Source of the DNA: Orbicella franksi
Lineage: Eukaryota
Assembly (NCBI GenBank): GCA_964199315.1
Contig: OZ116709.1
Span: 5,704,001-5,768,000 of the forward strand
DNA length: 64,000 nt
Direction of reading: 5' to 3'
The stretch's first letter is position 1, and each line of letters begins with the position of its first letter. The notes below the pieces were generated by a model. The model worked only from the letters and a program-made list of their open reading frames with translations, did no database searches and was not told where the DNA came from. The translations under genes and the position numbers were made by a program. Below are positions 6,299-63,424 of this stretch, in pieces.

Positions 6299-6431
6299 AT
6301 GCTCAGCTCTTCGCTGTTAAGAGCGCTATTGTTCTTGCTAGTTACTAGCCATGTGTCTGCCAAGAAAAATAAGACATCCTCCTCAAATCAAGATGTCAAA
6401 AATCAAACTGCGTATAAACGTCAATATATAG
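6299..6431 (+). CDS. First coding exon: signal peptide
   Basis: Acceptor ttacttccag at 6292, ATG at 6299; [28 protein letters not shown]...; donor gtaagt at 6432, phase 1. The acceptor implies a non-coding exon further upstream. Confidence 0.8.
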
Positions 6432-9400
6432 GTAAGTGGTTATTGACTGCCGCGCCTTGAGCTCAGCTGTATTGTCTAGATGTTTTGTTGAGTGTCTTGA
6501 ATGTGTTCAGTCATGTATTTAAGAGGCAACAGCGTAAAAAACTGCATGATTTAATTAACAAAATATCGTTGGTTTTTAAGGTGGTCATATATAAAACAAA
6601 CAAAAAATGAAACTCGAAACAAAAACATCTATGAAGTCATTATTGTAAATGTGGTTTGTAGTTACATGAAATTCAGATTAATTTACTAACCAATTTGTTT
6701 TCAGACTAAGAATCTACACCTTTACGGCCCATAACCTTGCGCTACGGGAAAACAAAACAAGACAGATCACGTGATCACTCAGTAATGTGTCAGCTTTCGA
6801 AAAAGCATGATATAAAACTCAAGTAACTCAGTTTTGAAAAGACATCACATATACCTTTCGAAAAGTAATTATCAATTATCCACTAAGTGACCTTTTCTTC
6901 TTCCAGTGACATTATGTTTGTTAAATTTTCCGCAGCTTATAACTATCCAAACCCTGTAAATCAGTACGGTGCTGATGGTCGTCCTTGTTGTCCGGCCAAC
7001 ACGTTTTGTACAGGTGCGTGACTTTCTCACTTTTCACAGGTGGATTCTTCGTTTGTCCAAAAGTATTTTATTACCACTAAACGCCTATCATGAATAGCCA
7101 ATACTAGCATCGGGGAGGGGGGGGGGGGAGAGGGGGAGGGGAAAGTCTGGTGCATGTGCCAAGTGTGTTTTAGGTCTGCTGCGTTTAGAAACAGGAATGG
7201 ATGCCTTTGAGAGGAAGCTCCCTAACGCCCAGACAGCCCTGGAACTTCCTGTTACCCTGGAGTGATCTATTATAGCTTTGGAGTCAGTGCGGTTACGAAT
7301 AAGTAGAGACGGGGCAATTTTAGTCAGTTCGGTCCCTTCATTCAGATTTACTAAAGAATAAAATGTTGACTCTTTTTCTCTTTGTCTATTCTTTCTCTCT
7401 TTGTGTATTCTGAAGAAAATAAACATTGATACGATTTTCACAGACAAGCCACCATGCCCACCAAGGGAGATGTCGGACTTGCCAAGCGCTCCATTGGATA
7501 CCGGGTTGCCGTTCAACATGGTACCTGGTGGTGTTCAGGTGGCTACACCCCCATCACAATCAGCGGTGCTCTCTGTGCCCATTCAAGATCAGATGGAAAG
7601 GCCGACGCAACCGCAGATTCCATTACACCATAAGCACTCTGAAGATGATAAAGAAAACCAGGAGTTGCAGCCCAACAGGGACCAAGTGTATCACATCAGA
7701 GGAAAACGTACGTATAATGCATCGCAACTTATATACAGTCGAACTTCCACTAACGAACACCTCTCGAGCTCTCTACAGCGGCCCCTCTTAATGGTCCCGG
7801 CCGGCAGTCCATTTAACCTCTAAACAACAGACATCTCTCCACAACGGCAACGGCCACTAAAACTCGTCCCAACTAGCAAAATAACCTCTTGTCAACGGCC
7901 AAAAATGTTGCACCCCACCCCCCCCCCAAAAAAAAACATAAAATAATAATAACAATAATAATAAAAAAAACACAGGTGTCATCCTACCTTTACCTCTCCA
8001 TAACGGCCACCCCTCTGCAACGGCCACTTTCCTCTGTCCCCAACTGTGGCTGTTGTGGAGAGGTTCCACTGTGATAAATTACTTTAGTTAACTTTTTCAA
8101 GACCATCTGTGCTGACACTCAATTGATTTGTCTCATTCAGAATTTAAGAGTCTCGGTTGTTGGAAAGACACATGGGATCGAGCAATTCCTCTGATGGAAA
8201 AGAAACACGCGATGCTGTTTGAGGCTGACTACAAGAAGAGAAGTAACGCCTTGATGAAATGTGCTGAGGCAGCTTTGGACAACAAGTTCACCATCTTCTC
8301 TCTTGAAAATGGAGGCCAGTGTTTCTCTGGGAAAGACGCGGACAAGACTTACATGAAATACGGTGTCAGTTATACCTGCAAAGGTGATATTAACATGTAC
8401 AAGATATCAGCTAGACTGTAGATATAATATATTTAGAAACAGCGGCGAAAGAGCCACTTCTTCACATTGATGAGAAACTAAATGAATGCGTTTTCTTTCT
8501 TTAGCTGATGGCGAAGGAGGGCCTTGGGGAAACGAGGTTTATCAGTAAGTAAAATACTTCCCTTTGGCTTTAATTTGCATTGTAAACATTCTGAACATTT
8601 TTATCGCTGTATAACAGCGCGCATTTCTAGTGACCTTTTGTGAAAGCCTCGTAATTGACCTGTGAAGTTGCCATCACCTATTTCTTGTTCAAAAGCGGGC
8701 CTGGTCCGGAAATGCAAACTTTGTTTTTAAACGGTGGATAACTGTTTTAACTCGTTCTCAAAGGCCTTTGTGTCCTCTGATAGATTCCTCAAAGACAACT
8801 CCTCTGTCACTGCGAAGAGCGACGAAACAGAAAGTGGTATTTCTAAAGAAAGTATCGCCCAAGCAAATCTGACCCCCACGACGGTTCCACCGACGACCCC
8901 CGCGGCGACCCCAACAGCAACCCCCTCAGTGACCCCCACAGCTTCCCCCACAGCAACACCATCAGTGCAGCCCACTACCGGCGCTCCTGAGGTAAACAAA
9001 GTTGAAGTAAACAAGTCGGAAAGCACTAATCCCTGGGCACAGATTCCTGAAGAAAAGTCCATTGATGAAGCTAGGAAACCCGATTTGAATCCCTTCAGAG
9101 ATGAGGTAGAACAGGATGCCGTTATTGCGGAGAATGAGGCAGATAAACAAGCCCTGTTGAACGAAGTTGCTGGTGCGAAGGGAAACAAAACAGAAGTAGA
9201 TGTGGACGAAGAGAGTGACGATGCTATTAGCGAGGAAATTCCATCCAGTCAAACGGATCTAGAAGTTCTTAATGCCCGTCCACCGAGACCCAGGCTGGTC
9301 ACTCCTTTTAGAGGGAGATGCCCTGTTTGCCGTAAGTACGCCTTGCTCTACAACTTCAATTTTTTTACAGATGTCTTTGTTCATGATCCGGCACTAATTT

Positions 9401-12400
9401 TCTCATATCGTAACCGTTCTCGATCTTGTTCTTTTTTGAGTGTTTTTTTTTTTCATCTGTGATGATTTTCACTCTTTATTAAATAATTGGGTTTGTTTTT
9501 TTTTTTAAGATGTCCTTTGATTTTTGTCCTAATTTTCCATCTTATGATATGAGGTTTGTAAGGACTAAGTGAATCGAAAGATGGCGTTTCATAGGTAAAA
9601 GAAAAAAAAAATCAAGAAAAAAAGGAAATTAAATAATAAAAACTATCGTTGCGTAAAAAATCAGTGACAAAATAATAAAATATTGGCAAAGGCTTGGAAA
9701 AAACAAATCATTTTGTTCTTAGTCTTTGCGTCTTCATATCCTGATATTTCGTGACAATCGTTTACTGCACTTCCGTGTTTGGGCAGCGGCTACTTGACCT
9801 GTCACATCTGTCACAGCTGTCACGCTCGTTCTCGCTCGTACTGAATGAACTCAAGCAATCACTGACCGCTTATAGTGCGTTGAATTTCTCGGTTATTTTA
9901 CGGAAAATTGGACGTTTGTTTTAAGTTCTAAGTGGACAGTATCGATCTCTCTAAGCGAGATGAATGGCTTGAGAAATTTCAGAAGAAAGGAAAGGTATTT
10001 AGATTTGTTTATCTCGTCCTGTCTTGATACGAAGTTGTGCACGTGGCGATCGACTTGCCTGCAGTTGCAATGTTCTGCGTGATTTTTTGAGCTGATTTTT
10101 GGGTAATGTTGATACGAAAGTTAAACATCGTTTTGAAGATTATCGTGGTGTAGTAGGAAAAACGGGGTATTGGAAGCAATAATTTTAAAGACTACCTCAG
10201 CCCTTCAGTTTTCATAAAAGTATTTTCACGACTTGCACGTCTGCATGTATATTCTGATGTCGATCGATGGTGTATGGAATTGCCTGGTAAAAGCAGAACA
10301 ATGAGCAAATGAGTTAGGGTAAAGAGAAAAATTGGAATTGATGTATGTAATTATACAGTCCGGTAATCTTTCTTGCAGACAGGCTGAAGTAACGCAATCT
10401 GCAAATGAACAGTGTCATGCTTTGCATACTGATACCCATGAAATGCTAATTTCTTTGTTTATTCTTGATCTAATAATTTTATCGTCGTGTTTTTATGCTT
10501 TACTGTCTCAGTAGATTAACTCTTGATGCCATTATTTTGTATTTTCTTCTAATTATTCAATTGGTTAACATCATTTTGGATGTTGTTTACCAGTTCCCTC
10601 CCTACCCCCTTGTCCAGCCCTTGACCATTAGCAGTAGGCCATTTATGAGTTGCCTTTTGCCTCTGTGTCAAAATGAGTCTTTGAGCAAAACCATTCATAT
10701 CGAAATATGTGCTGCCTGCATGTTCATCGTCTTGCAAATTGAACTCATTTTCATACGAAAGGTTTTGCACATAGACTCACCTTGAAACAGAGGCACAATT
10801 GCCTATTATTTTTTGCCCCCCCAAAAGGGGAAATTCTCTGGGGTGGGGACAAATTAATGGTTCTAACGTACCGGGGCTTAGAACATTCCATGGTTACATT
10901 TTAGTCAGGACGAGAGCATTACATGTCTCCATGTGCTTTTATGTTCCATTGGTCACAACACTGATTGTGTAAAAGTTTCTTTGATAACACTACGATAGTT
11001 GCTCTTGAATTATTATTTTGCGCAGTTTTTACAGTGAACAAATTATGTACTTTTACTGTTACAAAATCTTTAAGTAATAGGCCAGTTCCCAGTTACCTTT
11101 TGCCTCTGTGTCAAAATGAGGCCTCGTGCAAAACTTTTCCCATGAAATTGAGATTGATTTGCATGAAAATGAACATACAGTACAGTTTATTTTTCATAAC
11201 AATGGTTTTGCACAAAAACTCGTTTTGACATAGAGGCAAAGGGCAACTCTTAAATGGCCTAATAAAGAGGATATACTCAATAAAATTGTTGCATGTCACT
11301 GAAAATTTAAGACATATGGTATGACCCTAATCTGTAACAATCTGCCACATTCGAGACTGCCTAATATGCCACATTCGAGACCTGAACACCACAAGGGTGC
11401 CAAATTTTCTGGGCCAGGGTTGTCCCCACGATGAGGGTAGGCAAATAAATGCTTGCCTCTCCCCTGTCCCCTGGCAGTAAAATAAAATTCCAACTGCCCC
11501 ACCCCTGGGAGCAAATGCCTGGCTATGGAATCTCTAACAAACTTTATTTTCTTTTTTCTAGCAACCTTAAAGCCTACAGCTCCGATGAGTAAGTAGGATG
11601 CCATAATAATTGTTATCTTGAAGCCCTAACAAAGAAAACTGATGGTTGGTTATATATCTTAACACTTAAGTTTCATCTTCGGTAACAATAAAACTTGCTG
11701 AATAATAAACTGGGAGCTTCAAACTACGTAACTGCCCAAACGCTGGCATATGGGTATTGGATGGTTGTATCACAGCAGTTACATACAGGGTTTGTCCTTT
11801 AGGCTTATCACACAATTTTCTCTTCCACCTTTTGGTAGGTCAAAGAGAAGGGTGAATTGTATGGCATTAACCAAACAGGAGTCTGTGTTTGGGGCTGCTG
11901 TAGGTCCCCGGTCACCTTGTGAGCCTGGAACGGACTTTAACATCCATTTCTTAGAAAAAAAAACTCACCAAAAAATATCCCACAGCAATGCAACATGCAA
12001 ACTTATAGTTTCTTATCTGAAAGGAAAGTTAAAAGAATTTAGTCAGGGGTTTCAGTTTTGCCCACCTTTGGGTCAACGTTTGGTGAAAGACTAAGCCAGA
12101 TCCTTTTCAAATCGTAATTTTTATTTTGAGCTAGCTAGGAGCTTGTTTTAATAAGTATTTGAGCGAAGGAGTAAAACCGGCAGCACCGTGCAGTGCGACA
12201 TACAGTATAGTTGTGGTCACAGGCTAATTCTGGTCTCTCTGGGACCAAGTGAACCTTTTGCCATATATAGGTGTCTGTATTAAGGAGGGGACCGTGAGGA
12301 GAGGTTTGATTGTTTTTGTTTGTTTCTCAACAGCCTGCCACACAGCCATAGATCTCGCTTTCCTGATCGACGGCTCCGCCAGTGTCGAGCGATATGGCAT

Positions 12401-15400
12401 TGGCAACTTCCGCCGATTGGTCGACTTTGTCCGTGACGTAATGCTCGGTTTTACAGTCTCACGGACAAATACACGGGTTGGAACAATCGTGTTTGGTACC
12501 AAGCCCTATGTGCTCTTTGGCTTCAACAGTTACACGAACAACGGCGCTTTGTTCAACAGGTTCAATAAGGGTGTCCATTATCCGAAATCAGGGAGCCGTA
12601 TTGGCAGGGCCTTGTTGATGGCCCAAAATCAGCTGTTTCGCAGGAACCCCAGACGGTCAAGGACCACCAAAGTTGTCGTAGTTATCACTGACGGTAGCTC
12701 GATGGATGACGTCGCAGCTCCTTCAAATGCCTTAAAGGCCCGTGGTGTGAGGATCTACTGTGTAGGGGTGGGACGGTACATTAATGGTCGTCAGTTAGAT
12801 ATCATGGCTTCCCCACCTCGCAAGAATCACATCTTCACCGCAGATTGGACTCACTTAGGGATTGTGGTGAACGAACTTAGAAACGCAATTTGCTTAGGTA
12901 GGTTTAAAGTGATGTTGTTTTCAAGTGAACATGTCGAACAGCGCAAGCTTCTAGTCAATAATAGAAGCGTTCGGTACCAACAGTGGCCCGACTGTATTAC
13001 GTGCGATTTTTCTGAGTGAATGTTAAAAGCAGCTTTAAACTGGATGTGAGTAAACATGCTTCAGTGAGAATTATCAAAGCTTACCACAGTGTAAAACCAT
13101 TCTTTTCATAACACTTCTTGTTTTGGGTGGTCATTTACATTTTCAGTGAAATTACTGCGCGCGCACGTCGAAATGACGTCATATTGTGAGAATAAAATGC
13201 ATGGCTTAGGAGAGTAGCCTCCGGCTCATTGCTGTTTCCATTGGAACAATTTTTTGTGTAGAATGGCGTGAAACATAAAACTAGTTTGTTTTTCACCAAT
13301 GAGTTTCTATTAAACATAATCCGTATCAATTGTTGCGTCTCACTTGCAGGTACTGGAGGAAATCTTTTACCAGCGAAGCATCGTGTATGTCTTTGTCCAA
13401 TAACTAGACCAACAAGTAAGTATTTAGTTTCCATTAGACGCGTGAGGGAACAGACATGTCTCCCACGCAATTCCTTTACTTGCCAATACCACCTCAGAGA
13501 TTCGTGCCGAAAAATACTGCACTGATATTGCCTTCCCTGCATGAGAAAAGTTCCAGATTCGAACCGAAAAAATTTCATGCCGATAACGCAGGACCCTGTG
13601 GTTGGAACCTCCCATGTGAAAAGGTCGCGGATACTCCTCCGAAAAATCAAATTAAACCCTTAAAAGAGACCAAGCTAGGCGTGGCTCGAGCTTTATTTGA
13701 CCTCTAAACTCTCAAAGATGCCACTTTGAAACGGAAATACATCGGTTTTTGTTGTTTCTTCACGTCCAACCCTAAAAGATACTTTGCCGGCTGAAATAGT
13801 GGCCTTTCGTCCTGAGCTCCCTAAGTGAGACAGAATTCTTGATTTTTACCCCTAAGCGAGACGACGAACATCCCCGAGCTTTTCAGATGGAAGTCCTCCC
13901 CCCGTGTGCAGAACTGCAGACATTCGTGTTATGTTCCAGATTGTTTGTTGTTCGGTTATGAGTTATCGGCGGTACGTAAGCAAAATGTGATCGTAGACAC
14001 TGCTGGGATCTACTATATAAATAGCGCTACTTCGCCAGGGTGACGACCTCGTCTTGGTTGTCTGTCTTACGGGAAATGGAAATGAGAGCGAGCGAAGTGA
14101 CGTTGGTTTCTTAGGCCAGACACGTTTATATACTATTGCGTCGTCGCTCCTTAGAGAAGACTGAAGTAGAATCAAGTTAAATTAATACATATCCCTTTTA
14201 CTTTTAGGACCGACAACGAAACCAACTAAAAGGCCGCGTAAGTAAATTTAATTGTGGTTGGTCTCTTAATCGTCTTTGTGCGTGCCCGTTAATAAGGCCG
14301 TTGTTCTTGGTATACCATACTGTTTTGACGATAATTTAATTGAACATGTCAAAGTTTTACGTTGTCAAGTTCGTTAAGGGATCTACGAAACTTTTGAAGG
14401 ACTAAACACATTTTCAAAAACATCTGAAATTGTTTACTTGTCAAAACGTTTACTCTTTGAAAAGAACTTATCAAACAATGGTACAGCAATCGTATGCAAT
14501 ATTGTACTGTTTAAACAGGATACGTTGGAAGTTATAATGTTGCTTGGTTTTGAGACGTTTGCGATATCTAGAGTTACTTACTTTAAATCTATTTCTCACT
14601 ATCTATGACTTTGGGAAGGAACAAGAATGAGTGATAATCTTTAAGAGAAGAGATTTTGAAGCGATTTTCAAAGTGATTTTCAAAGCGTGCTCTGTCTGCC
14701 TTGTTGTCCTTGTTGGCGTGTGATAACGAAGTCATGATTTTTTTTTTCATAGGCTTCCCTCGTATTGTTGCATTTTACCCGCTCAGCAGGAAAACAAGAG
14801 GCAGAGACATCAGTTCCAGTCAAAACCCCGAGGGAAAGCTTCATAACGTACGACCGGCACCGGGCCCCGACGGGCTCCCTGATGGCTCTTACTACTTCCA
14901 CGGAACAAAGACCAGCTACATAGATTTTCCTAACAACGGCAAGCTCGACTCAAGATACTCACTGACCCTCCTTGCCTGGGTTTATCCAGAGGGTTCCGGA
15001 CCGATCTTTCACTTCGCCCCCGGTGGAGTTCGCTTCTGGGTCGTTAGGCCCAATACTCTGTTTGTGCGTTTTGTTCGCCGCACAGGGAGACCAACCCGAC
15101 AGCTGATTAGTCGCACGTTGATCCCAAAGCAGTGGAACTACGTTGGAGCATCTTATGACGAGAAGACAGGAATTGCAACCCTGTGGCGCAATTCGCAACC
15201 TGTCAAGTCAGTGTTTATCGGTCGCATTCGCCTCGCTACCAACCGACCGGTCAGGATGGGTGCCTTACCACGTGACTTGCGGTACTACCGTGGTAGGATC
15301 TCTTGCATGCAGGTGTATAGCGTACCTCTGTCTGGACCAGAGATAAAGAGGGCTAAAAGGGTCTGCTTCCGAGGACGTAAGTGATATTTTCAATCTAAGA

Positions 15401-23306: not shown

Positions 23307-23354
<48 letters not shown>

Positions 23355-56800: not shown

Positions 56801-59800
56801 CTATCAAGAGATTACGTTATACGCGAGGGTCAAGAAAAACTGGAAAAGCCTTGCGGCTTGTAGTTGGAGAGCTGTTTAGACGCAGCCGAAAAAAGCGGGT
56901 GTTGATAGTGGTAACAAATGGTCAATCCTACGACAGCGTTAAAATACCAAGCTTTCAGATACACCAAGCCGGAATTGAAGCCTTTGCAGTTGGTGTTGGA
57001 ACTCGAGTTAGGAACAGCGAGCTGAGTACAATAGCCACAGACTCTCGCCACATATACATGGTGAACTTCAAGACGCTTAATGGCATCGTCAAGAGCATTG
57101 TCAGGAAAGCTTGCAGAGGTATTTAACACTACCTGACTGTTTATTGTTGCCACATTTTTTATTAACACAGTATATCCCTTGCGGAACAGGAAATTACGAC
57201 TTGTACTGCAGGGGAGCCAGCAAAATATACTATTCGACAGTTTCTGAAAATTACCTTTTAATTTAACGAGTCTATTCATCGTTTTCGGAGTTTTGAATTT
57301 CTAAAGACAGGGGTGGAGCTTCTTTTTTTTATTTTGGTTTCTCGCAGGACTAAGAGTAGTAGTACTTAATAGTTTTGCTCGCTGTAATTCGTCAGGGATA
57401 TAAGCTAATTGCAAACTGGCATCTTTCTTTCAGCACAAATTACGACACGGCCAACAGTTCGACCAACCAAGCCGTCTCCAACCAGAAAACCAAGTAAGTT
57501 TGTTATGGAAATACTGTAATCATGTAGTTATGTTGTTCGAGAACAGTAGACAATTGTTTGCAGTTTTCTTAAGTTTCTGGCCGTTAGCGCAGTTTCCGCG
57601 GTGGCCTCATGGTTAGAGCGCTCCGGATCACTGAAGCGGTCACTGCTAAGTGCTCAAGGGGACGCTGCCTTGTGTTCTTGGGTAGGACACCTAACTCTCC
57701 CAGTGCCTCTCTCCAGGTGTATAGATGGGTACCGGCGAATTTAATGTTGTGGTTACCTTGCGATGGACTAGCATACGATCTATGGGGGAGTAGAAATACT
57801 CCTAGTCGGTCATGCTACAGAAACCGGGATAAACTCCAGTCTGATGGGTCACTTGGCTCGTATGCAGACTTTAACTTTTACCGCTATTTATTGTGAACTT
57901 AGTCTTTTTGTTTTTTGTTTTTTTTCTGTCAGGTTTTCCTACGCCCATCGCCATCTACACACTCGATCGCAAGACTCGCGCACGCGACATAAGCCCAGCG
58001 AAAAACCTTCCAGGTCGAAGCTACAACATCCGGTACGCTCCTGGTCCTTATGGACAGCCTGGCGAATCAACAGAATTCTTTGGTCGCCGTAACAGCTACA
58101 TCCGGTTTCCAAATAACGGCAGACTGGACGCTAAGGACTCTATAACTCTTCTAGCCTGGATTCTACCGTTTGGTCGCGGTCCAATCTTCGAGTACTTTCG
58201 GGGAGTAAGGTTTTGGGTTGTGCGCTCGGACACGTTATACGTTCACTTCATCCGCCGGAACGGGCGGCGCACGAGGGTGTTGATGAAACGACGCCTCAGA
58301 CCACGCCGTTGGAATTACGTCGGTGCCACGTACGACAAACGAACTGGTATGGCTACCCTGTGGCTGGATTCAAGGCCGATATTGTCGCAGAATATCAAAC
58401 GAATTCAATTGGCGACCAAAAAGACTGCTTACATGGGTGGAACATTCCGAGGTCGCATCGCTTGTATGCAGGTTTATTCTGACCCTCTGACTGGACCTCA
58501 GATTAAGAAGGTCAAGAACCTTTGTAATAAACCAGGTAAGTCATATAAGTCTTGAAGTGGAATCCGTAAAATTCTCATGTAGGCTTGTAGCATGCGGTTG
58601 CAATAGATAAATTTCCAGCGAATAATATTTGTTTTTGCATGCGGATTATTACTTAAGGGATTAGACGAGTGACTCTTATGGGGTAAATATTTTCTTCTCT
58701 CACCCACTCTCCCCAGCCCCCATAGGCGAAGCCCCAGCTTACCCTCCAAGAAAGTAATTTATCTAAAACCTTTCGTTCTTCTACATTGATTTCAAACTTG
58801 ATAAAGGGATTCTACTATTTTGTTCCCGGACTTCAGAAGAGATTACGCTCTCACTCTGTCAAGCAGTAAATATATACATCAGTTGCAATACTTTTTTTAA
58901 TCTTTTTTTTTATGGTTTTTCTGAATTTTAAATCTACTGATCCTATTTAAATTACTTACAGGTCCTTACACGCCAACAACACCATCTCCTGGTAAGTGTT
59001 TGATTTGTATATATTTCAATTTGTGTTAATTACTGTAATGTTCTATAAATCATTCAATTTGTCACGGTTAAGGTGTGTCTGAATAGTGCGAAAGGATCAT
59101 TTTTTTCTCTCTTTCTGTTCCCTAGCATTGCCTCCAGCTCTGGCTTTCTATCCCTTAAACGTGCGTTACAACACCCGTGACGTCAGCAGGAGCAAAAACC
59201 CGTCAGGGCGCATGGCAAATGTGCGACCTGGCCTGGGTCCAGACGGAAGGCCTGGTGGCTCCTTTAGGTTCAAGGGTCGTGCAGACAGTTACATACAGTT
59301 CCTGAATAAAGGTCGTCTGGACGCCCGGAATTCCATCTCTATCTTGGCTTGGATAAATCCGGATGGACCAGTTGGTCCAATCTTCAATTACAAGCCTGAC
59401 GGGTTTGGCGTGCACTTGTGGATGGTCCGTCGGCGAGTGTTGCTGGTACGTTTCGTGACGCGTACACGAAAGTTTACAAAGCCAGTGCAAACGAACCTCA
59501 TTAAACCAAAGGCTTGGAATTTCGTCACCGCTACCTATGATCAACGTTCGGGAATTGCCCGATTGTACATCGATTACAGGGAAGTTGCGTGGACGAGAAT
59601 CGGCCGGATACGACTGGCTACGAACTATCCAGCAAGAATGGGAGCCCGTATTGGAGACAAGCGTTATTTCCGTGGACGAATAACTTGCCTGCAGATTTAC
59701 GACGTCCCACTTCGACCGATACAAATCAAAGCCGCCAAGAGACTCTGCTTGAAGACAAGTAAGCAAAGCAATTCTTAATTAAATTTGCATTCGTATTACA

Positions 59801-62800
59801 CAAGCATCTCAGAAAGATTTGAGGTGTGTTCCAAGAAACCTTTTTTCCTTTCTTTACTTGTTATCAGTTGATGAATCGATTCAAGAGTGATTCGTATTGA
59901 ATAATTGATCGATAGCTTGATAGATCGAATTGATTGATTTGTTTGTTTGTTGTTTATTAATGCTTTCATTGCTTGGTCCATTACTGATCGATCGATTGAT
60001 TTTTTTTTTTTGGCAAAATTTCTGCATCTAACTTAAGCTACATAGTCGTTAAAAGTTTTTACGTTATCACTATCGTGCTTTTCATTCTTTAAACAGAGGT
60101 TATAACCAAACCAACAACGCGACCGACACCTACCAAGCCCACCCCACCAAGGCGTAAGTAACCAATCAGCAATGCTCTTTCTCCATTTTTCCCGTCTCTC
60201 TATAGGCGACCAGAGGAGAAAGGAAGAAGTCGCCTTTACTAAAAATGAAGTCACCTTTACCAATTAGTGGAAAATCTGATTTTTCGTTTTCCGTGTTTTC
60301 TTTTTTCTTTTATCCCGATTCCTTCACCTCAGTTTATCCCTTAATTGACATACTTTTAGATATGTATATTCACGAATCTTAAAAGTGTGCGGTTTTAGTT
60401 AACGGTAATAAAAAAACTCCTCTGCTTTCATGCGAAAAAAGCAAAACATAAAATTTGAAAATTGGTTTGCTTTATGATGACATTTTAATTTGAGTTCTCA
60501 ATGTTTGATTATTAAAACATTCTCGTCATAGCAATCTTCTCAAGTTCAAAATGCGCTTTGCTTGAATTTATTGTTCTCTATATTTTCTTTCTGTAGCTTG
60601 CCGAGCGAATATGGATCTTGGATTCCTTATCGACAGCTCCTACAACTTGCGACGAGTAGGGCGCGGAGCTTTCAGACTTCTTACACGTTACATTGCAAGA
60701 CTTCTTTACACGCTTCGCATTTCCACTCAAGAGACCCGAGTCGGCATGGTTACGTACGCGTCAAGACCCAGGCCCCTGTTCCGCTTTAACCGGTTTTTCA
60801 GGGCGTCTTCCATGTTGTCGGCCATACGAAGAATTCGCCTTCAAAGGGGTCCTCTTAGGATAGGAAAAGCTCTGTACTACGCTCGTAGGTACCTGTTCAG
60901 AAGAAGGCGTCAATGTGGACGCAAGCGCGTTCTCGTGGTGTTTGCAAGTGCACGCTCAGTAGACAGAGTGCAAAGAGTGGGACGCGTTTTAAGGCGCATG
61001 GGAATTGAAGTGTTCGTTGTTGGCTTTGGTAGACGATTTAGCAAGGCGCAGTTATTCAAAATCGCTACAAATGGGCTGCACGTGTTCACGGCGACGCCGA
61101 GGACGTTGGCTGCAGTTCTGGGCGCCATACGAGCTAAAGCGTGTTCAGGTATCTTATGGGTTAAATTTGTGATCAATAATTCACAGTCATGTTCACACAC
61201 ACTATCCTGCTTAAGAATAGTCTTTAACCCACTTAATCGAACAGTGACAGTTTACAAGTTGATATCATTAATAACAATCTCAACGGTTCTATTTGCAACA
61301 GTTAAAAAAGCAATTACGTTTAACGGTTATAATCAGCCCTGGATCACTTTACAGATCAGCCGCCTTTTAAGCCATCGGAATATAATTCAAGTAACAACGC
61401 GTTAAATTTGATGTTTGGTTTAAATTGGCCCTCAGCCTCTTCTTAACTTACCATTGATTCATTTAAAGATCTTTGTGACCTCCTTACCTTGCTTACCACA
61501 AGCGATTCAATCGTTGTCGTTTTTATTCTGTTTAGTAACCGGATCAGCAGCCGCCAGAGCTATATTCCCATTTAACGGTGTGACAAGAGGACGAGATATA
61601 AGCATCAACCGCAACACTGCTGCAAGACTTGTCAACGTCAAGCCTGCACCAGGCCCAGACGGCCTTCCTCTTGGATCGTACTATCTCCAGGGCATCGCAA
61701 ACAGCTACATATACTTTCCCAACAAGGGCTGCCTAGATACAAAGAATTCCCTCACCATAGTGGTTTGGGTCTACCCTGAGGGCAGCGGACCGATCTTCCA
61801 CTTCTTCCCTCGCGGCTGGGGGGTACATCTTTGGATGAAGAATCCGCGCACCCTACTGGTGAAGTTCGTGCCTAGGTCCTTGCAGACCATCAGCGTTGTT
61901 ACAAGCCGGCGAATCAAACCGAAGGCCTGGAACTACATAGCGGCAACCTACGATTACGTCACTGGTTTGGCCACTCTGTGGAATGATGCCATACCTATAT
62001 CTCAGAGGAATATTGGAAAGATCCAACTGGCGACTAACTACCCAGCTATATCAGGGAAAAAGCCAAGAGATCGAAAGATTTTCCGTGGCCGGATAGCATG
62101 TCTTCAGATTTACGATCGAGCATTGAATGGGAGACAACTCGGAGCTCTGAAAAAGAAGTGTTTCAGAGGTTTGTTTTCAGAATTATCGTTAAAAGAAGTT
62201 TTCAATTTAATATCGATATCGCGCTATTGATATTGATCTTTTGAAATTTTCTTTGTTCTTCGTCAGCTCGACCCACGCCTACTCGTCCACCACCAGGTAA
62301 GACCAACTTTTCTATCTCACTTACCATATTCAATGAAAACTCTTGAGATTTGAAAGTTCGGTAAAAATGTAAATGGTAAGACAATTTTGGCTCGACCGAC
62401 CGGAAAATCTTCGAAATAAAAGGAACGTCTTGAAAGGTAGTCAAAAATTTCCAACTGAAATATCCGAGTGGAAAATGTACTTACCATTTGCAATTATTCG
62501 CCGCCCTCTTGGAATTATGATCAGGTTTAACTCGTCAGTAGTCTATCTCGGTAAATTAGGGGGTTTGGGGTAGATGGTAAGTGGCCAATCCGAATGAAAG
62601 TCACCATCAGGCATTTTTGCTTACCATTTGCACAACCGTTGACGAACCGCTTTCTTCATGTAAATGGCAAACAACCGGCATCTCTTTAGATTTTGACATC
62701 CATATTTTCAGCCTCCTTCGTCAGTGTTGACGGCATGTCCGTATTATTTTATCACCTTCTCATACATCTTTTCTCCTTTCAGCTCTTCCACTTCTAGTCG

Positions 62801-63424
62801 CTGTTTATCCACTGGACAGAATTAATGGCGGCCGTGACATCAGCCCACGAAAATGCCCGACCGCAAGGCGAGTTGGCGTGAGAATCGCCCCAGGTCCAGA
62901 CGGACGAAAATACGGATCCACCCAATTCTATGGCAACCGCAACAGCTACGTCGAAATCCCGAACAACGGCAAACTTGACACCGTGGCCTCCATTTCCATT
63001 CTGACCTGGGTTTATCACGAGGGCATCAAAGGTCCTATCGTCAACTACAGACCAGGTCCCGGATGGGGCGTTCACTTGTGGATGGTTGGACCACGCACGT
63101 TATTTGCACGGTTCGTCCGCAGGGATGGAGTGTTTACCAAAGCAGTGGTCGTCACGAGCAGAAAGATACGGTACAGAGCCTGGAATTACATCGGTGCTAC
63201 ATACGACTACAAGAGTGGTGTTGCCAAACTATGGGTGAACTCGAGGTTGCTTGTGGTGAAGAGTATTGGACGATTCCGATTGGCTACGAACTATCCAATC
63301 AGAATTGGTGCGCGTCGTGGTGACAAACGGTACTTCAAGGGAAGGATTTTCTGTGTGCAAATCTACAGTCGTGCGCTAAACCGGAAACAAATTTTGGCGG
63401 CTAGTAAAACGTGCTTCAGGCCGT
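6299..63424 (+). CDS. Giant secreted Arg-rich multi-VWA / LamG-like repeat protein, at least 7,017 aa, 66 coding exons, 3' end beyond window
   Basis: Hand-spliced chain of GT-AG exons with compatible phases and no in-frame stop: signal peptide, WSC-like domain, 13 VWA, 18 LamG-like, 27 microexons. The join across the 3-kb intron 9332-12333 is inferred from phase compatibility and the lack of another start/signal peptide. Confidence 0.85.
6936..7013 (+). CDS. Exon: short Cys-containing segment
   Basis: ttttccgcag|...|gtgcgt, 78 nt, phase 1-1; [26 protein letters not shown]. Confidence 0.7.
7444..7707 (+). CDS. Exon: Pro/Gln-rich low-complexity segment
   Basis: ttttcacag|...|gtacgt, 264 nt, phase 1-1; [17 protein letters not shown]...YHIRGK. 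Confidence 0.7.
7736..8071. mobile_element. Tc1/mariner(pogo)-type MITE
   Basis: Left TA|cagtcgaacttccactaac; right end reverse-complements to cagtggaacctctccacaac; same terminal motif as the 30716-33454 element. Confidence 0.55.
8141..8383 (+). CDS. Exon: WSC-like domain (main part)
   Basis: tctcattcag|...|gtgata, 243 nt; FKSLGCWKD...MKCAEAA...[12 protein letters not shown]...YTCK fits the WSC Cys pattern. Confidence 0.8.
8505..8544 (+). CDS. Exon: end of WSC-like domain
   Basis: ttctttag|...|gtaagt, 40 nt, phase 1 to 2; [13 protein letters not shown] matches the WSC C-terminal GG.W...VY motif. Confidence 0.8.
8784..9331 (+). CDS. Exon: Thr/Pro-rich then acidic spacer ending RPPRPR...CPVC
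   Basis: tgatag| phase 2 matches the preceding exon; donor gtaagt at 9332; lies in ORF 8734..9462. Confidence 0.75.
10633..10807. mobile_element. MITE family B copy
   Basis: taggcc...ttgcctctgtgtcaaaatgag shared with 11076-11263; ends gcctatt. Confidence 0.6.
11076..11263. mobile_element. MITE family B copy
   Basis: aataggcc...ttgcctctgtgtcaaaatgag and inverted ctcgttttgacatagaggcaa...ggcctaat. Confidence 0.65.
12334..12897 (+). CDS. VWA domain V1 (MIDAS near-intact)
   Basis: cag|...|gtaggt, 564 nt, phase 1-1; [16 protein letters not shown]...VITDG...AICL. Confidence 0.92.
13350..13415 (+). CDS. Linker microexon m1 (CLC motif)
   Basis: ttgcag|66 nt|gtaagt; [22 protein letters not shown]. 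Confidence 0.75.
14208..14237 (+). CDS. Linker microexon m2
   Basis: cttttag|30 nt|gtaagt; [10 protein letters not shown]. Confidence 0.8.
14753..15376 (+). CDS. LamG/ConA-like domain L1
   Basis: catag|624 nt|gtaagt; GPDG...SYIDFPNNG...WNYVGASYD...CMQVY...CF. Confidence 0.9.
15634..15663 (+). CDS. Linker microexon m3
   Basis: tgtag|30 nt|gtaagt; [10 protein letters not shown]. Confidence 0.8.
16045..16674 (+). CDS. LamG/ConA-like domain L2
   Basis: ttag|630 nt|gtagct; LPDAVAFYP...KKLCFK. Confidence 0.9.
16820..16873 (+). CDS. Linker microexon m4
   Basis: catcag|54 nt|gtaagt; [18 protein letters not shown]. Confidence 0.8.
17424..17990 (+). CDS. VWA domain V2 (MIDAS degenerate)
   Basis: ttccag|567 nt|gtaagt; [16 protein letters not shown]...VVMGSRS...KIC. 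Confidence 0.9.
18403..18444 (+). CDS. Linker microexon m5
   Basis: ttacag|42 nt|gtaaga; [14 protein letters not shown]. Confidence 0.8.
   Translation, partial: HLLHMLHLSQHKS
18914..19540 (+). CDS. LamG/ConA-like domain L3
   Basis: caacag|627 nt|gtaagt; [10 protein letters not shown]...RFCFRA. Confidence 0.9.
19832..19858 (+). CDS. Linker microexon m6
   Basis: ttttag|27 nt|gtaagg; RPVTPKPTP. Confidence 0.8.
20014..20187. mobile_element. MITE family B copy (diverged)
   Basis: aatagcccatttccgagttgcct...gaggtaattcggaattggcctgtt; similar layout to 10633 and 11076. Confidence 0.55.
20465..21103 (+). CDS. LamG/ConA-like domain L4
   Basis: tatag|639 nt|gtaaga; LPRIVAIYP...[10 protein letters not shown]...RCFK. 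Confidence 0.9.
21462..21491 (+). CDS. Linker microexon m7
   Basis: cgttag|30 nt|gtatgg; [10 protein letters not shown]. Confidence 0.8.
21805..22371 (+). CDS. VWA domain V3 (MIDAS intact)
   Basis: tctcag|567 nt|gttggt; DGSGS...GRTYIG...LTDG. Confidence 0.9.
22972..23001 (+). CDS. Linker microexon m8
   Basis: ttttag|30 nt|gtaagt; [10 protein letters not shown]. Confidence 0.8.
23683..24318 (+). CDS. LamG/ConA-like domain L5
   Basis: ttgcag|636 nt|gtttgc; [12 protein letters not shown]...RCFLP. Confidence 0.9.
24722..24856. mobile_element. Degenerate MITE flanked by CTG
   Basis: Internal inverted motifs atccac..gtaaatctctatccag / ggatagtgatttatccagtggat; CTG at 24719-21 and 24857-59. Confidence 0.5.
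24860..25071. mobile_element. PIF/Harbinger-type MITE with CTG target duplication
   Basis: TIR gggcccgtttct(a/c)gaaagccccggaaac, one mismatch in about 28 bp; CTG on both sides. Confidence 0.75.
25169..25219 (+). CDS. Linker microexon m9
   Basis: ttgcag|51 nt|gtaagg; [17 protein letters not shown]. Confidence 0.8.
25542..26084 (+). CDS. VWA domain V4 (MIDAS degenerate, extra Cys)
   Basis: gtttag|543 nt|gttagc; [16 protein letters not shown]...PRCGRRRVL...LTTGES. Confidence 0.88.
26228..26899 (+). CDS. LamG/ConA-like domain L6 (GCLDT type)
   Basis: gtatag|672 nt|gtacgt; [12 protein letters not shown]...QCFRT. Confidence 0.9.
27655..27699 (+). CDS. Linker microexon m10
   Basis: tttcag|45 nt|gtttgt; [15 protein letters not shown]. 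Confidence 0.8.
27873..28117. mobile_element. Foldback MITE with long inverted arms
   Basis: attttacagttg...agcgaggctggaggtgaccttgctttgataca mirrored by tgtatcaaaacaaggtcacctc...agcctcgct...caactgtaaaat. Confidence 0.7.
28186..28755 (+). CDS. VWA domain V5 (MIDAS intact)
   Basis: ctttag|570 nt|gtaagg; DGSSS...GGTYIG...LTDG. Confidence 0.9.
29164..29181 (+). CDS. Linker microexon m11 (18 nt, smallest)
   Basis: tttttcag|18 nt|gtaagt; IPTTPR. Confidence 0.75.
29400..30035 (+). CDS. LamG/ConA-like domain L7
   Basis: attcag|636 nt|gtaagt; [11 protein letters not shown]...KCFLP. Confidence 0.9.
30464..30520 (+). CDS. Linker microexon m12
   Basis: ttcaag|57 nt|gtaagt; [19 protein letters not shown]. 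Confidence 0.8.
30716..33454. mobile_element. Tc1/mariner(pogo)-type non-autonomous element with nested insertion
   Basis: TA|caagtggaaccttgatttaacgaa ... ttcgttaaatcgaggttccactg|TA; many subterminal cgatataacgaa repeats. Confidence 0.75.
31147..33122 (-). mobile_element. Decayed PIF/Harbinger-like element nested in the previous element
   Basis: Perfect 25-bp inverted repeat aaaggtatgggtcgcacttgggaaa; frameshifted minus-strand remnant 31390-31699 ([14 protein letters not shown] / [28 protein letters not shown]) resembles a Harbinger transposase N-terminus. Confidence 0.6.
33664..34212 (+). CDS. VWA domain V6 (MIDAS degenerate, extra Cys)
   Basis: caccag|549 nt|gtaagt; DGSRR...PTCGRRRVL...VTTGVS. 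Confidence 0.9.
34814..35482 (+). CDS. LamG/ConA-like domain L8 (GCLDT type)
   Basis: ttctag|669 nt|gtatgt; [12 protein letters not shown]...KCFRP. Confidence 0.9.
35597..35626 (+). CDS. Linker microexon m13
   Basis: ttttag|30 nt|gtacct; [10 protein letters not shown]. Confidence 0.8.
35908..36139 (+). CDS. VWA domain V7, first half
   Basis: cgttag|232 nt|gtttgt, phase 1 to 2; [16 protein letters not shown]...AINRIR. Confidence 0.85.
36245..36517. mobile_element. MITE family C inside the V7 intron
   Basis: tagaggggttttcatttgagtgt...acacttaattgaaaaccgctata; homologous to 49702-49976 in opposite orientation. Confidence 0.7.
36894..37222 (+). CDS. VWA domain V7, second half (MIDAS intact)
   Basis: ttccag|329 nt|gtaagt, phase 2 to 1; [11 protein letters not shown]...ITDG...KVCRPTPT. 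Confidence 0.85.
37722..37742 (+). CDS. Linker microexon m14
   Basis: ttacag|21 nt|gtaagt; PTVPTPT. Confidence 0.75.
38156..38785 (+). CDS. LamG/ConA-like domain L9
   Basis: acgcag|630 nt|gtaagc; PPRAVALYP...VCFR. Confidence 0.9.
39625..39654 (+). CDS. Linker microexon m15
   Basis: ttctag|30 nt|gtaagt; [10 protein letters not shown]. Confidence 0.8.
39763..40398 (+). CDS. LamG/ConA-like domain L10
   Basis: ttttag|636 nt|gtaagt; [10 protein letters not shown]...RCFKK. Confidence 0.9.
40547..40573 (+). CDS. Linker microexon m16
   Basis: ttccag|27 nt|gtgagt; LPVTKPTIP. Confidence 0.78.
40889..40918 (+). CDS. Linker microexon m17
   Basis: tttcag|30 nt|gtaagc; [10 protein letters not shown]. 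Confidence 0.78.
41046..41609 (+). CDS. VWA domain V8 (MIDAS intact)
   Basis: atctag|564 nt|gtgagt; [14 protein letters not shown]...GGTKIG...LTDG. Confidence 0.88.
41906..41938 (+). CDS. Linker microexon m18
   Basis: tttcag|33 nt|gtaaca; [11 protein letters not shown]. Confidence 0.78.
42075..43228. mobile_element. TA-flanked non-autonomous DNA transposon (Tc1/mariner-like)
   Basis: TIR c(c/t)ttattggtactaattttcgcg at both ends, TA on each side, subterminal ttcgcg repeats. Confidence 0.75.
43602..44243 (+). CDS. LamG/ConA-like domain L11
   Basis: ttgcag|642 nt|gtatga; [11 protein letters not shown]...RCFLK. Confidence 0.9.
45237..45290 (+). CDS. Linker microexon m19
   Basis: ttttag|54 nt|gtaagt; [18 protein letters not shown]. 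Confidence 0.85.
45593..46135 (+). CDS. VWA domain V9 (MIDAS degenerate, extra Cys)
   Basis: ctatag|543 nt|gtaagc; DATSS...PQCGRRRVL...AAGRS. Confidence 0.9.
46544..47179 (+). CDS. LamG/ConA-like domain L12 (GCLDT type)
   Basis: tcttag|636 nt|gtttgt; [11 protein letters not shown]...QCFRQ. Confidence 0.9.
47283..47327 (+). CDS. Linker microexon m20
   Basis: gtcaag|45 nt|gtaagc; [15 protein letters not shown]. Confidence 0.8.
47468..47761 (+). mobile_element. tRNA-derived SINE family B with (TTA)/(TAA) tail
   Basis: Pol III A-box-like tggccgggtggtt and B-box ggttcaaatcc, then a non-tRNA body (gccaactggtcagcctccaaccagttgggattcttaa) and simple-repeat tail; absent from the duplicated intron. 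Confidence 0.75.
47732..47816. repeat. (TTA)n/(TAA)n microsatellite with an orientation switch
   Basis: ttattattattat, then aataataataataataa, then about 18 att units. Confidence 0.95.
47817..48720 (-). mobile_element. 5'-truncated non-LTR retrotransposon with restriction-like endonuclease (R4/Dong-like), frameshifted
   Basis: [18 protein letters not shown] (CX2CX8HX4C), RPDIVIKDH...[13 protein letters not shown], terminal [13 protein letters not shown]; 1-nt frameshift near 48175; no RT domain retained. Confidence 0.85.
49017..49658 (+). CDS. LamG/ConA-like domain L13 (duplicate of L11)
   Basis: ttgtag|642 nt|gtatga. Confidence 0.9.
49702..49976. mobile_element. MITE family C, inserted after the duplication
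   Basis: tagagcgattttcaattgagt...ctcaaataaaaaccgctcta; absent at the homologous site near 44290. Confidence 0.8.
50120..50173 (+). CDS. Linker microexon m21
   Basis: tcttag|54 nt|gtaagt; [18 protein letters not shown]. Confidence 0.85.
50478..51020 (+). CDS. VWA domain V10 (duplicate of V9)
   Basis: ctacag|543 nt|gtaagc. Confidence 0.9.
51426..52061 (+). CDS. LamG/ConA-like domain L14 (duplicate of L12)
   Basis: tcttag|636 nt|gtttgt. Confidence 0.9.
52151..52204 (+). CDS. Linker microexon m22
   Basis: ttctag|54 nt|gtaagt; [18 protein letters not shown]. Confidence 0.8.
52484..52773 (+). mobile_element. Full-length tRNA-derived SINE family A with 16-bp TSD
   Basis: A box tggcctcatggtt and B box ggttcgagccc; TSD tttattataacagctc at 52468-52483 and 52774-52789. 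Confidence 0.9.
52979..53270 (+). CDS. VWA domain V11, first half
   Basis: atacag|292 nt|gtgtgc, phase 1 to 2; [14 protein letters not shown]...[14 protein letters not shown]. Confidence 0.87.
53312..53763. mobile_element. TTAA-flanked MITE (Kolobok-like GG termini)
   Basis: TTAA|ggtcattcc ... ggaatgacc|TTAA. Confidence 0.65.
53952..54846. mobile_element. TTAA-flanked non-autonomous element (Kolobok-like)
   Basis: TTAA|ggacggtgcctact ... agtaggcaccgccc|TTAA (13/14 match). Confidence 0.7.
55302..55573 (+). CDS. VWA domain V11, second half (MIDAS intact)
   Basis: ctccag|272 nt|gtaagt, phase 2 to 1; [21 protein letters not shown]...KACLPFVP. Missed by the ORF track in the coding frame. Confidence 0.87.
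55996..56019 (+). CDS. Linker microexon m23
   Basis: ttccag|24 nt|gtaagc; PTKRPTPP. Confidence 0.78.
56260..56425. repeat. Perfect 78-bp tandem duplication with 10-bp spacer
   Basis: attctcctgtactttc...tatattgccat at 56260-56337 and 56348-56425. Confidence 0.9.
56585..57118 (+). CDS. VWA domain V12 (MIDAS degenerate)
   Basis: attcag|534 nt|gtattt; DASGR...VTNGQS...KACR. Confidence 0.9.
57434..57493 (+). CDS. Linker microexon m24
   Basis: tttcag|60 nt|gtaagt; [20 protein letters not shown]. Confidence 0.8.
57596..57882 (+). mobile_element. Diverged SINE family A copy
   Basis: Collinear with 52484-52773 (gtggcctcatggttag...gggtaccggcgaa...cgatggactagcat...acttggctcgtatgcagacttt). Confidence 0.85.
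57933..58535 (+). CDS. LamG/ConA-like domain L15
   Basis: tgtcag|603 nt|gtaagt; FPTPIAIY...NLCNKP. Confidence 0.9.
58962..58991 (+). CDS. Linker microexon m25
   Basis: ttacag|30 nt|gtaagt; [10 protein letters not shown]. Confidence 0.8.
59126..59758 (+). CDS. LamG/ConA-like domain L16
   Basis: ccctag|633 nt|gtaagc; [10 protein letters not shown]...RLCLKT. Confidence 0.9.
60097..60153 (+). CDS. Linker microexon m26
   Basis: aaacag|57 nt|gtaagt; [19 protein letters not shown]. Confidence 0.8.
60597..61148 (+). CDS. VWA domain V13 (MIDAS degenerate, extra Cys)
   Basis: ctgtag|552 nt|gtatct; DSSYN...RQCGRKRVL...ASARS. Confidence 0.9.
61536..62168 (+). CDS. LamG/ConA-like domain L17 (GCLDT type)
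   Basis: gtttag|633 nt|gtttgt; [12 protein letters not shown]...KCFR. Confidence 0.9.
62267..62296 (+). CDS. Linker microexon m27
   Basis: cgtcag|30 nt|gtaaga; [10 protein letters not shown]. Confidence 0.8.
62783..63424 (+). CDS. LamG/ConA-like domain L18 (last exon in window; gene continues)
   Basis: tttcag|642 nt|gtaagt; [10 protein letters not shown]...[10 protein letters not shown]...TCFRP. Confidence 0.9.

Follow-up and report, generated by a model that had tools for sequence, protein, structure and literature searches.

The stretch of DNA analysed here comprises 64,000 nucleotides of Orbicella franksi (GenBank assembly GCA_964199315.1, contig OZ116709.1, positions 5,704,001 to 5,768,000, forward strand); this whole stretch is called the window, and positions are counted from its first letter. 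Between 6299 and 63424, on the + strand, it contains a chain of 66 exons that is probably the 5′ part of one very large stony-coral gene, coding for a secreted, polycationic protein of VWA and LamG domains. The chain had been proposed in a first-pass annotation made from the sequence alone. When it was rebuilt independently, identical figures were obtained: 66 exons, 21,052 nucleotides and 7,017 codons, free of stops. All introns of the model are GT-AG, and nearly all long open frames between 6.3 and 63.4 kb are located on the + strand. The exons after 12334 are in phase 1-1, except for the internal junctions of two split VWA domains. At 63424 the final exon closes with the donor GTAAGT; the gene thus runs off the window, as had been supposed. 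The reading as a single gene is strongly supported by comparative genomics, rather than by transcripts.

Local hidden Markov models (HMMs), built from a few of the window exons, recognise, on the + strand from 12.3 to 63.4 kb, 18 exons of LamG type and 13 VWA domains, with no match on the - strand of the window. Together with Pfam searches they reproduce the domain set first described, i.e. WSC, 13 VWA and 18 LamG domains. Two of the 13 VWA domains (VWA7 and VWA11) are divided between two exons. Splice-site inspection places an AG before and a GT after the domain exons, in phase 1. The model further contains 26 hinge microexons, each coding for 6–20 residues rich in proline and threonine, also flanked by AG and GT and in phase 1-1. 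A control rule (AG..GT, phase 1-1, at least 50% Pro plus Thr, 15–69 nucleotides) finds 25 of these 26 hinges, with three extra matches in 36 kb of introns and seven on the opposite strand. The model developed from automated chaining to a curated set of 64 exons and then, after tblastx comparison with a coral ortholog, to 66, with the exons at 7444-7707 and 13350-13415 added because of their conservation. The first chaining pass missed or mis-split several domain exons and the second predicted too many small exons; curation of the final model was based on domain homology, phase and comparison with the ortholog.

The ortholog is located on one strand of a 953-kb contig of a distant coral (ENA ERZ25073780, ctg155015), of which the pieces L004, L001, L005, L007, L008 and L009 were used. 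Exon 1 (6299..6431; like all exons described below, on the + strand) contains the start codon and a putative signal peptide, in which a hydrophobic core is accompanied by a basic residue and by small residues at positions -3 and -1; it closes with a phase-1 GT donor. The layout is the same in the ortholog, from L004 4301, where the donor (around L004 4430-4445) reads GCAAGT instead of GTAAGT, likely forming a GC-AG intron. Exon 2 (6936..7013) is short and cysteine-rich, with 62% amino acid identity to L004 4620-4697 and splice sites in the same places. Exon 3 (7444..7707), a proline-rich piece matching L004 6566-6835 by tblastx, is bounded by AG and GT and in phase 1-1 in both species; no Pfam family was found for it. 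Exon 4 (8141..8383) contains the WSC domain (PF01822, 30.8 bits on this exon alone, with a cut-off of 27.8) and shares 82% amino acid identity with L004 7362-7598. The domain is completed by exon 5 (8505..8544), 12 out of 12 residues of which are identical in L004 8444-8479. Exon 6 (8784..9331) codes for a mucin-like Thr/Pro stretch followed by an acidic block, with a net charge of -15; homologous open reading frames (ORFs) occur in many coral assemblies, with 42–99% identity.

Upstream of the gene, an ORF at 650-964 on the + strand matches positions 117–195 of the local VWA HMM, the carboxy-terminal half of the domain (Pfam 22.4 bits, just below the cut-off), and closes at a GT donor, 5.3 kb before the start codon. 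Beyond the WSC match, it was the only, sub-threshold, Pfam hit in the head exons and upstream ORFs. No counterpart is present upstream of exon 1 in L004, and it may be a stray copy of an exon or belong to the end of an adjacent gene.

After the head, the domains follow in the order VWA1, Lam1, Lam2, VWA2, Lam3, Lam4, VWA3, Lam5, VWA4.Lam6, VWA5, Lam7, VWA6.Lam8, VWA7 in the first half and Lam9, Lam10, VWA8, Lam11, VWA9.Lam12, Lam13, VWA10.Lam14, VWA11, VWA12, Lam15, Lam16, VWA13.Lam17, Lam18 in the second, with a dot for each junction without a hinge microexon. VWA1 (12334..12897; PF00092, 121 bits; net charge +15) has a complete metal-ion-dependent adhesion site (MIDAS) and 87% amino acid identity to L004 15203-15763, with the acceptor kept. 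It is followed by a small exon of 66 nucleotides with two cysteines (13350..13415, phase 1-1), 81% identical at the amino acid level to L004 16111-16173. A hinge at 14208-14237 (ortholog L004 16304-16333) leads to Lam1 (14753-15376; PF13385, 58.6 bits; net +25), and one at 15634-15663 (ortholog L004 18663-18704) to Lam2 (16045-16674; PF13385, 53.5 bits). VWA2 (17424-17990; PF00092, 89 bits), in which the MIDAS is degenerate, is preceded by the hinge 16820-16873 (ortholog L004 20444-20497). Lam3 (hinge 18403-18444, domain 18914-19540) scores 45.8 bits with PF13385 and 365 bits with the local HMM, and Lam4 (hinge 19832-19858, domain 20465-21103) was placed by a local HMM score of 317 bits and its splice sites. 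VWA3 (hinge 21462-21491, domain 21805-22371; PF00092, 125.7 bits) again has a complete MIDAS, and Lam5 (hinge 22972-23001, domain 23683-24318; PF13385, 51.3 bits) has a net charge of +33. The hinge 25169-25219 precedes VWA4 (25542-26084), which abuts Lam6 (26228-26899; PF13385, 73 bits) directly, both domains having an extra cysteine. VWA5 (hinge 27655-27699, domain 28186-28755; local HMM, 355 bits) is another domain with a complete MIDAS.

Lam7 (hinge 29164-29181, domain 29400-30035) corresponds to L001 1760-2389, with a ratio of non-synonymous to synonymous substitution (dN/dS) of 0.13; an ortholog of its 18-nucleotide hinge was not found in L001. VWA6 (33664-34212; dN/dS 0.08), behind the hinge 30464-30520 (ortholog L001 2860-2913), forms an extra-cysteine pair with Lam8 (34814-35482; dN/dS 0.18), and both the pair and its hinge-less junction are kept in L001. 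VWA7, with a complete MIDAS, follows the hinge 35597-35626 and is split into 35908-36139 and 36894-37222 (phases 1-2 and 2-1); the ortholog is split as well, at L001 6429-6656 and 7664-7999. The hinge peptide at 37722-37742 is identical in L001 9599-9619 and leads to Lam9 (38156-38785; dN/dS 0.09), while Lam10 (39763-40398; dN/dS 0.08) follows the hinge 39625-39654 (ortholog L001 11063-11092). Two hinges (40547-40573 and 40889-40918) precede VWA8 (41046-41609; MIDAS complete; dN/dS 0.14), and the same slot in L001 also contains two. Next are Lam11 (43602-44243; dN/dS 0.22), with its hinge at 41906-41938 (ortholog L001 14841-14879), and the hinge 45237-45290 (ortholog L001 16538-16591), followed by the hinge-less pair VWA9 (45593-46135; dN/dS 0.26) and Lam12 (46544-47179; dN/dS 0.19), an extra-cysteine pair kept in L001.

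The next part of the array is the product of a tandem duplication of a 5.4-kb block (LamG-hinge-VWA-LamG-hinge), with synonymous divergence (dS) of 0.08–0.27 and dN/dS of 0.13–0.38 between the copies. Lam13 (hinge 47283-47327, domain 49017-49658) is a recent copy of Lam11, with 93% amino acid identity, a dS of 0.27 and a dN/dS of 0.13. VWA10 (50478-51020) and Lam14 (51426-52061), behind the hinge 50120-50173, are recent copies of VWA9 and Lam12, to which they are 84–91% identical in nucleotides, introns included (dN/dS 0.22 and 0.38). As nearly all exons are in phase 1-1, the array can grow via tandem duplication of exon blocks, and exons could also be skipped without a shift of the frame. VWA11 (hinge 52151-52204), with a complete MIDAS, is split into 52979-53270 and 55302-55573, which match local profile positions 6–109 and 108–196. 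VWA12 (hinge 55996-56019, domain 56585-57118) is collinear with L005 1862-2403, with 67% nucleotide identity. Lam15 (57933-58535) matches L005 3089-3715 and its hinge (57434-57493) L005 2686-2760, the latter with 75% nucleotide identity; for Lam16 (59126-59758) the counterpart is L005 4171-4821 (78% nucleotide identity) and for its hinge (58962-58991) L005 3818-3847. The hinge 60097-60153 is near-identical in L005 6076-6132 and precedes VWA13 (60597-61148), which forms the last hinge-less extra-cysteine pair with Lam17 (61536-62168). The hinge 62267-62296 and Lam18 (62783-63424; ortholog L005 10038-10700) close the array in the window; in L005, another hinge and then more domains follow.

Some intronic sequences in this region are of a different nature. 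Open frames on the + strand at 47420-47632, 52478-52693 and 57588-57893 resemble one interspersed repeat family, in different frames, and induced false microexons during exon chaining. The intron after the hinge 47283-47327 contains a simple repeat, at about 47750-47826, which would translate as a long run of isoleucines. In the ortholog, introns contain opposite-strand ORFs with weak phage-integrase and DEAD/helicase matches (L004 13530-13904 and L008 19935-20180, both on the - strand), which are probably transposon remnants.

The domains can be assigned to families with profile scores above the cut-off: the four VWA exons tested score 89–126 bits with PF00092 (cut-off 23.8), and the six LamG exons scanned 46–73 bits with Laminin_G_3, PF13385 (cut-off 27.6). 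The latter are not classical laminin G or neurexin LNS domains (PF00054, PF02210), to which the six exons showed no match at E ≤ 0.01, nor pentraxins, as the sole match to PF00354, for one domain, was of 18.6 bits, with a cut-off of 25. No transmembrane-like segment, EGF pattern or run of at least five Gly-X-Y triplets is present in the 7,017 residues. Features of gel-forming or membrane mucins are not seen either: the Thr/Pro stretch in 8784-9331 is only about 45 residues long, instead of hundreds, the hinges 6–20 residues, and the Pfam scans gave no VWD, C8 or SEA match. By alignment, six VWA domains (1, 3, 5, 7, 8 and 11) have the full set of MIDAS residues (DxSxS, Thr and the TDG-strand Asp), and the other seven (2, 4, 6, 9, 10, 12 and 13) have one or more of them replaced. 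The extra cysteine marks the five hinge-less VWA-LamG junctions: it is found in all five VWA domains there, and in exactly their five LamG partners. In the ortholog, the two other tested cassettes keep both cysteines. In the Lam17 ortholog (L005 7948) the extra cysteine is absent by a strict motif test, which could be due to a motif variant, and its partner VWA13 keeps its own.

An AlphaFold2 model of Lam9 (mean confidence score, pLDDT, of 92) is an all-beta jelly roll. Structural comparison with Foldseek retrieves concanavalin A-like lectin folds at 9–19% sequence identity, among them the lectin-like subdomain of clostridial neurotoxins (9–14% identity), pentraxins, the TSPN domains of collagens XV and XVIII and a fragment of a Mytilus shell-matrix protein (P86860). 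On the predicted model, these matches indicate a generic fold class and no relationship to toxins. A look-up in the ESM Atlas gave generic Laminin_G_3 clusters only.

The charge of the protein is extreme. The polycationic nature first proposed is borne out by a calculated isoelectric point (pI) of 11.47, an arginine content of 13% and a net charge (K+R-D-E) of +911 over the 7,017 residues. It is spread over the whole array, each VWA or LamG exon having a net charge of +15 to +37 and a pI of 10.6–12.0. The head differs: its approximately 415 residues, comprising the small cysteine-rich piece, the proline-rich piece, WSC, the Thr/Pro stretch and the Asp/Glu-rich block, have a pI of about 5, six N-glycosylation sequons and a net charge of -12. 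In the 6,560 residues of the array only a single N-x-S/T sequon is present, where shuffled sequences contain 31.6 ± 5.2 (minimum 17). Positive charge and sequon avoidance are kept in more than 50 ortholog domains. For the LamG domains, the net charge is +21 to +34 in the window and +21 to +36 in the ortholog; the nearest LamG_3 relatives, from amphioxus, Lingula, Ptychodera and Nematostella, are acidic to neutral (-18 to +5). When the LamG domains are aligned, only 20 of 228 columns are at least 70% basic, despite there being about 38 basic residues per coral domain, which indicates selection on charge density and not on fixed sites. Judged from these alignments, the positive charge of the LamG domains is a derived bulk property under selection.

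Comparison with the ortholog provides strong support for the exon chain. At the nucleotide level, exons align with 66–78% identity and the single aligned microexon with 90%, while the introns are unalignable. The exon alignments stop close to the predicted boundaries, a few bases and at most about 15 nucleotides away; two VWA exons align only in part. The domain order is the same, both halves of VWA7 included. A Pro/Thr microexon flanked by AG and GT and in phase 1-1 occupies 16 of the 17 hinge slots tested in the ortholog; one slot is double in both species, and three hinge-less junctions are hinge-less in both. Eleven domain exons have dN/dS values of 0.08–0.26 at a dS of 0.8–2.7, with no stops. 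Exon-sized ORFs homologous to Lam9, Lam18 and the exon at 8784-9331 were found in many coral assemblies, including Tara-labelled scaffolds, at 42–99% identity. As far as such comparisons can tell, exon structure, reading frame, charge and sequon scarcity are held by purifying selection in the distant coral. It is therefore extremely improbable that the locus is an unexpressed, decaying relic with an open frame that is accidental and recent. No spliced RNA was seen in the runs examined, as would be expected of a relic, but a spliced frame of 21 kb is stop-free, dN/dS with respect to the distant coral is low, splice sites, phases and microexons are kept while the introns have become unalignable, and charge and sequon avoidance are conserved.

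Alternatively, the window could contain not one giant gene but a row of smaller VWA/LamG genes in tandem, transcribed separately. Any exons in phase 1-1 can be joined to each other, and an open spliced frame by itself is therefore weak evidence for one gene. The head of the gene, however, argues against such an array. All six head exons, including the signal-peptide exon and the identical 12-residue exon, are present in the same order in the ortholog, and exons 2 and 3 and VWA1 have their splice sites at equal positions in both species. Protein similarity to L004 ends exactly at the donor of exon 6, and the acceptors of the head and VWA1 match. The array exons thus depend on the exons upstream and have no start of their own. 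The cassette at 6299-9331 is the sole head with a signal peptide; a second one is found neither in the window nor in 100 kb of ortholog loci. An extra WSC exon does occur in the downstream array of the ortholog, between LamG and VWA exons, but it starts with a hinge and is cationic, and so does not provide a new amino-terminus. Finally, conserved Pro/Thr microexons in nearly every gap between domains make sense only if the neighbouring domains are joined. Separate genes are for these reasons unlikely, also in view of the public annotation described next.

Automated annotation had been expected to split the gene or to lose its microexons; RefSeq has only a 692-residue fragment of it, covering VWA13, Lam17 and Lam18. 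This Orbicella faveolata protein (XP_020613493.1, LOC110051761, "uncharacterized") is 99.5% identical to our model over 614 residues, from an internal methionine of VWA13 through Lam17 and the hinge 62267-62296 to Lam18, and thereby uses three junctions of the model: the one between VWA13 and Lam17 and both that flank the hinge before Lam18. Its carboxy-terminal tail lies outside the array. It is the sole retrieved protein that crosses any junction, the other relatives being single-exon ORFs from genomic contigs. That RefSeq models this piece as a gene in its own right would favour separate genes, but the fragment begins just after an assembly gap. The old O. faveolata scaffold MZGG01001328.1, which matches 3.7 kb of the window at 98.9%, is interrupted (in 1486752-1510771) by 1.4 kb of Ns immediately before VWA13, with unrelated sequence on both sides and no array downstream, so that the RefSeq model is truncated by the state of the assembly. 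By these matches, the window belongs to O. faveolata or a sibling species. A piece of the same scaffold matches the window intron 53308-53767 in reverse orientation.

Also as first stated, no characterised protein of this build was encountered in profile, proteome and literature searches. A profile of the 18 LamG domains, run against 1.84 billion representative sequences, found the subtype in mosaic proteins, as yet uncharacterized, from amphioxus, Lingula, Ptychodera and Nematostella, and no long coral protein or alternating VWA/LamG array among its matches. We found no paper on this protein or on LOC110051761, and the laminin-G proteins described from the Acropora skeleton are neurexin-like and unrelated. 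A Pocillopora verrucosa protein (XP_058964439.1, 599 residues) has one LamG_3 domain with a net charge of +10, and its carboxy-terminal part resembles a C-type lectin by eye; it shows that the subtype is also used singly in corals.

Several points weigh against a single gene for one secreted polycation. Logan contigs of three RNA-labelled runs, checked for junctions, contain no joined exons and cover exons and introns alike, and contigs from RNA runs cross predicted splice sites, for example at 8730-9453 and 8510-8895. No read or contig joining exons was thus seen in RNA-labelled runs, as separate genes would also allow. In a run of raw polyA reads (10 million), zero reads were found on the 5′ exons; this is a weak sign of silence, since the 5′ end of an mRNA of more than 30 kb is poorly sampled. 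In some runs (suggestively X8, X10 and X13), the exon-dense stretch 25542-26899 does give two to four times more matched words than a mixed stretch (0.57 versus 0.13 in X10, 0.50 versus 0.17 in X8), but DNA runs rise likewise on it, from 0.61 to 0.85, and the higher share, which may only reflect conservation of exons between strains, is not counted as expression. Among the representatives searched, clustering can hide long annotated proteins: the RefSeq protein of 692 residues sits behind a representative of 246, and absence from the match list is thus no proof that an annotated full-length ortholog is absent. The 3′ end is located beyond the window, where a membrane anchor or another terminal domain would not be seen. 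The head, at -12, is far below what neutralises a body of +911, so that packaging requires another polyanion.

In coral RNA-labelled runs, roughly one in four words from 6299-16298 is present. Two intronic stretches, at about 7785-7984 and 10585-10784, have a summed contig depth of more than 100 in RNA-labelled runs, compared with 0–40 nearby, and are probably interspersed repeats transcribed elsewhere.

In the ortholog, the array continues for at least 37 kb past the counterpart of Lam18, with at least 11 further LamG and at least eight further VWA exons. The last exon seen still has a GTAAGT donor, and the end of the array is not reached within these 37 kb. The orthologs of Lam12 and VWA12 are about 83 kb apart in ctg155015, compared with 9.4 kb in the window, which could be due to a lineage-specific expansion of the array or to large insertions. 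A possible reading, which we put forward tentatively, is that of one gene of more than 110 kb, of which the 66 exons of the window are less than half. Its protein would exceed 11,000 and possibly reach about 14,000 residues, and would comprise LamG (29 or more), VWA (21 or more) and additional WSC domains, all supercharged, with a pI of around 11–12, and free of N-glycans. It would form the polycation half of a charge-driven material (an adhesive, a matrix or a mineralising coacervate), evolved in stony corals from acidic lectin-type domains.

Comparison with known systems shows partial likenesses. The closest solved chain to VWA3 is that of collagen VI alpha3 (COL6A3, PDB entry 9han; 256 bits, five matched stretches), which resembles the window protein, itself presumably secreted, in its long tandem runs of VWA domains of one sequence type, with the MIDAS residues kept in some and lost in others. 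Unlike collagen VI and the matrilins, the window protein has interleaved LamG_3 domains, Pro/Thr microexon hinges and domains with a pI of 10.6–12, and the 7,017 residues of its 5′ part contain no Gly-X-Y triple helix such as the one flanked by VWA domains in the collagen VI family. The second-best solved VWA relative, at 121 bits, is PTMP1 of the mussel byssus (PDB entry 4cn8), a holdfast matrix protein made of VWA domains only. It offers a known case of VWA domains that act as matrix or glue between fibres, but has two domains instead of dozens and lacks LamG, WSC and supercharging. The LamG_3 mosaics (XP_019624450.1, XP_013421969.1, XP_070543443.1 and XP_032240504.2) have the same Laminin_G_3 subtype in two to five tandem copies; the one from amphioxus also starts with WSC, and one mosaic has a VWA domain. 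They differ in size (600–4,400 residues), in partners (F5/8C, pentraxin, C-type lectin, PAN and D8C) and in the net charge of their LamG domains, given above. The precursor of eosinophil major basic protein combines an acidic amino-terminal piece with a lectin-fold domain; this domain, with a pI of around 11, binds polyanions and is condensed in storage. That protein is a single small domain neutralised by its propiece, which the coral head cannot do for its array, and there is no homology. Neither this architecture nor domains so supercharged and free of sequons are known from proteins described so far.

As to function, the first-pass annotation had proposed one secreted giant protein of this architecture, a lineage-specific structural glue or fibre, and had named among its candidate roles the adhesive, acidophilic material of spirocyst threads in hexacorals. 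The giant protein and its architecture are supported, and a structural glue or fibre remains a reasonable suggestion; the spirocyst thread is disfavoured. Spirocysts take acid dyes in classical histology, a giant polycation would stain with such dyes, and an ensnaring thread could make good use of multivalent adhesion modules. Spirocysts are, to our knowledge, present in all Hexacorallia. Nematostella, however, has no comparable protein among the LamG profile matches, which contain one or two near-neutral LamG_3 domains in other architectures. VWA or laminin-G proteins are unmentioned in the spirocyte-transcriptome papers found, and structural genes of cnidae are usually highly expressed in polyps, yet the polyA run was blank on the 5′ exons, the latter a weak argument because of the under-sampled 5′ end. 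We consider a spirocyst role very unlikely.

The protein could also be the polycation that pairs with acid-rich proteins in the calcifying (skeletal organic) matrix of stony corals, but this role appears rather unlikely. In its favour, all homologous exon ORFs with 74–99% amino acid identity come from ENA/Logan assemblies, the two that could be placed being the Orbicella RefSeq fragment and Tara scaffolds, and the RNA runs that hold words of the window are labelled coral metagenome. Skeletal proteomes of corals regularly include VWA proteins (PMC4890752). The LamG model resembles the Mytilus shell-matrix fragment P86860, and a gene so poorly annotated would escape proteomics searches. On the other hand, the protein is not among the skeletal proteins described in the literature, matrix genes of the calicoblast are normally well expressed in adult tissue, yet no reads were seen, and the taxonomic range rests on ENA/Logan assemblies. 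The protein may act beside acid-rich skeletal proteins or in attachment; the matches that can be named come from stony corals.

We infer a multivalent polycationic matrix or adhesive scaffold. The protein would be secreted as an extended, flexible, multivalent polycation, able to condense or cross-link polyanions such as sulfated glycans or mucus, acid-rich matrix proteins and negatively charged surfaces. The six VWA domains with a complete MIDAS may bind acidic residues of protein ligands in a metal-dependent manner, and the LamG and WSC modules may contribute lectin-type binding. The hinges are probably O-glycosylated spacers, and charged surfaces free of N-glycans would allow dense contact or packing. 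Expression is probably limited to a stage or a rare cell type.

As the public Orbicella annotation nearly lacks the gene, neither transcript counts and single-cell atlases nor proteomic surveys of skeleton, mucus and cnidae could have revealed it; with the full exon model, such data sets can be searched for it. If the giant-gene reading is true, the protein would be among the largest of animals. Folded extracellular domains are rarely so basic, and here around fifty VWA and LamG domains per gene are shifted by some 30–40 charges with respect to their nearest relatives. The shift is held in two corals separated by more than one synonymous change per site, with sequons nearly purged. Such a signature is one of selection on a physical property, i.e. 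charge density and a naked surface, and not on single binding sites, and it points to an undescribed charge-driven extracellular material in reef-building corals.

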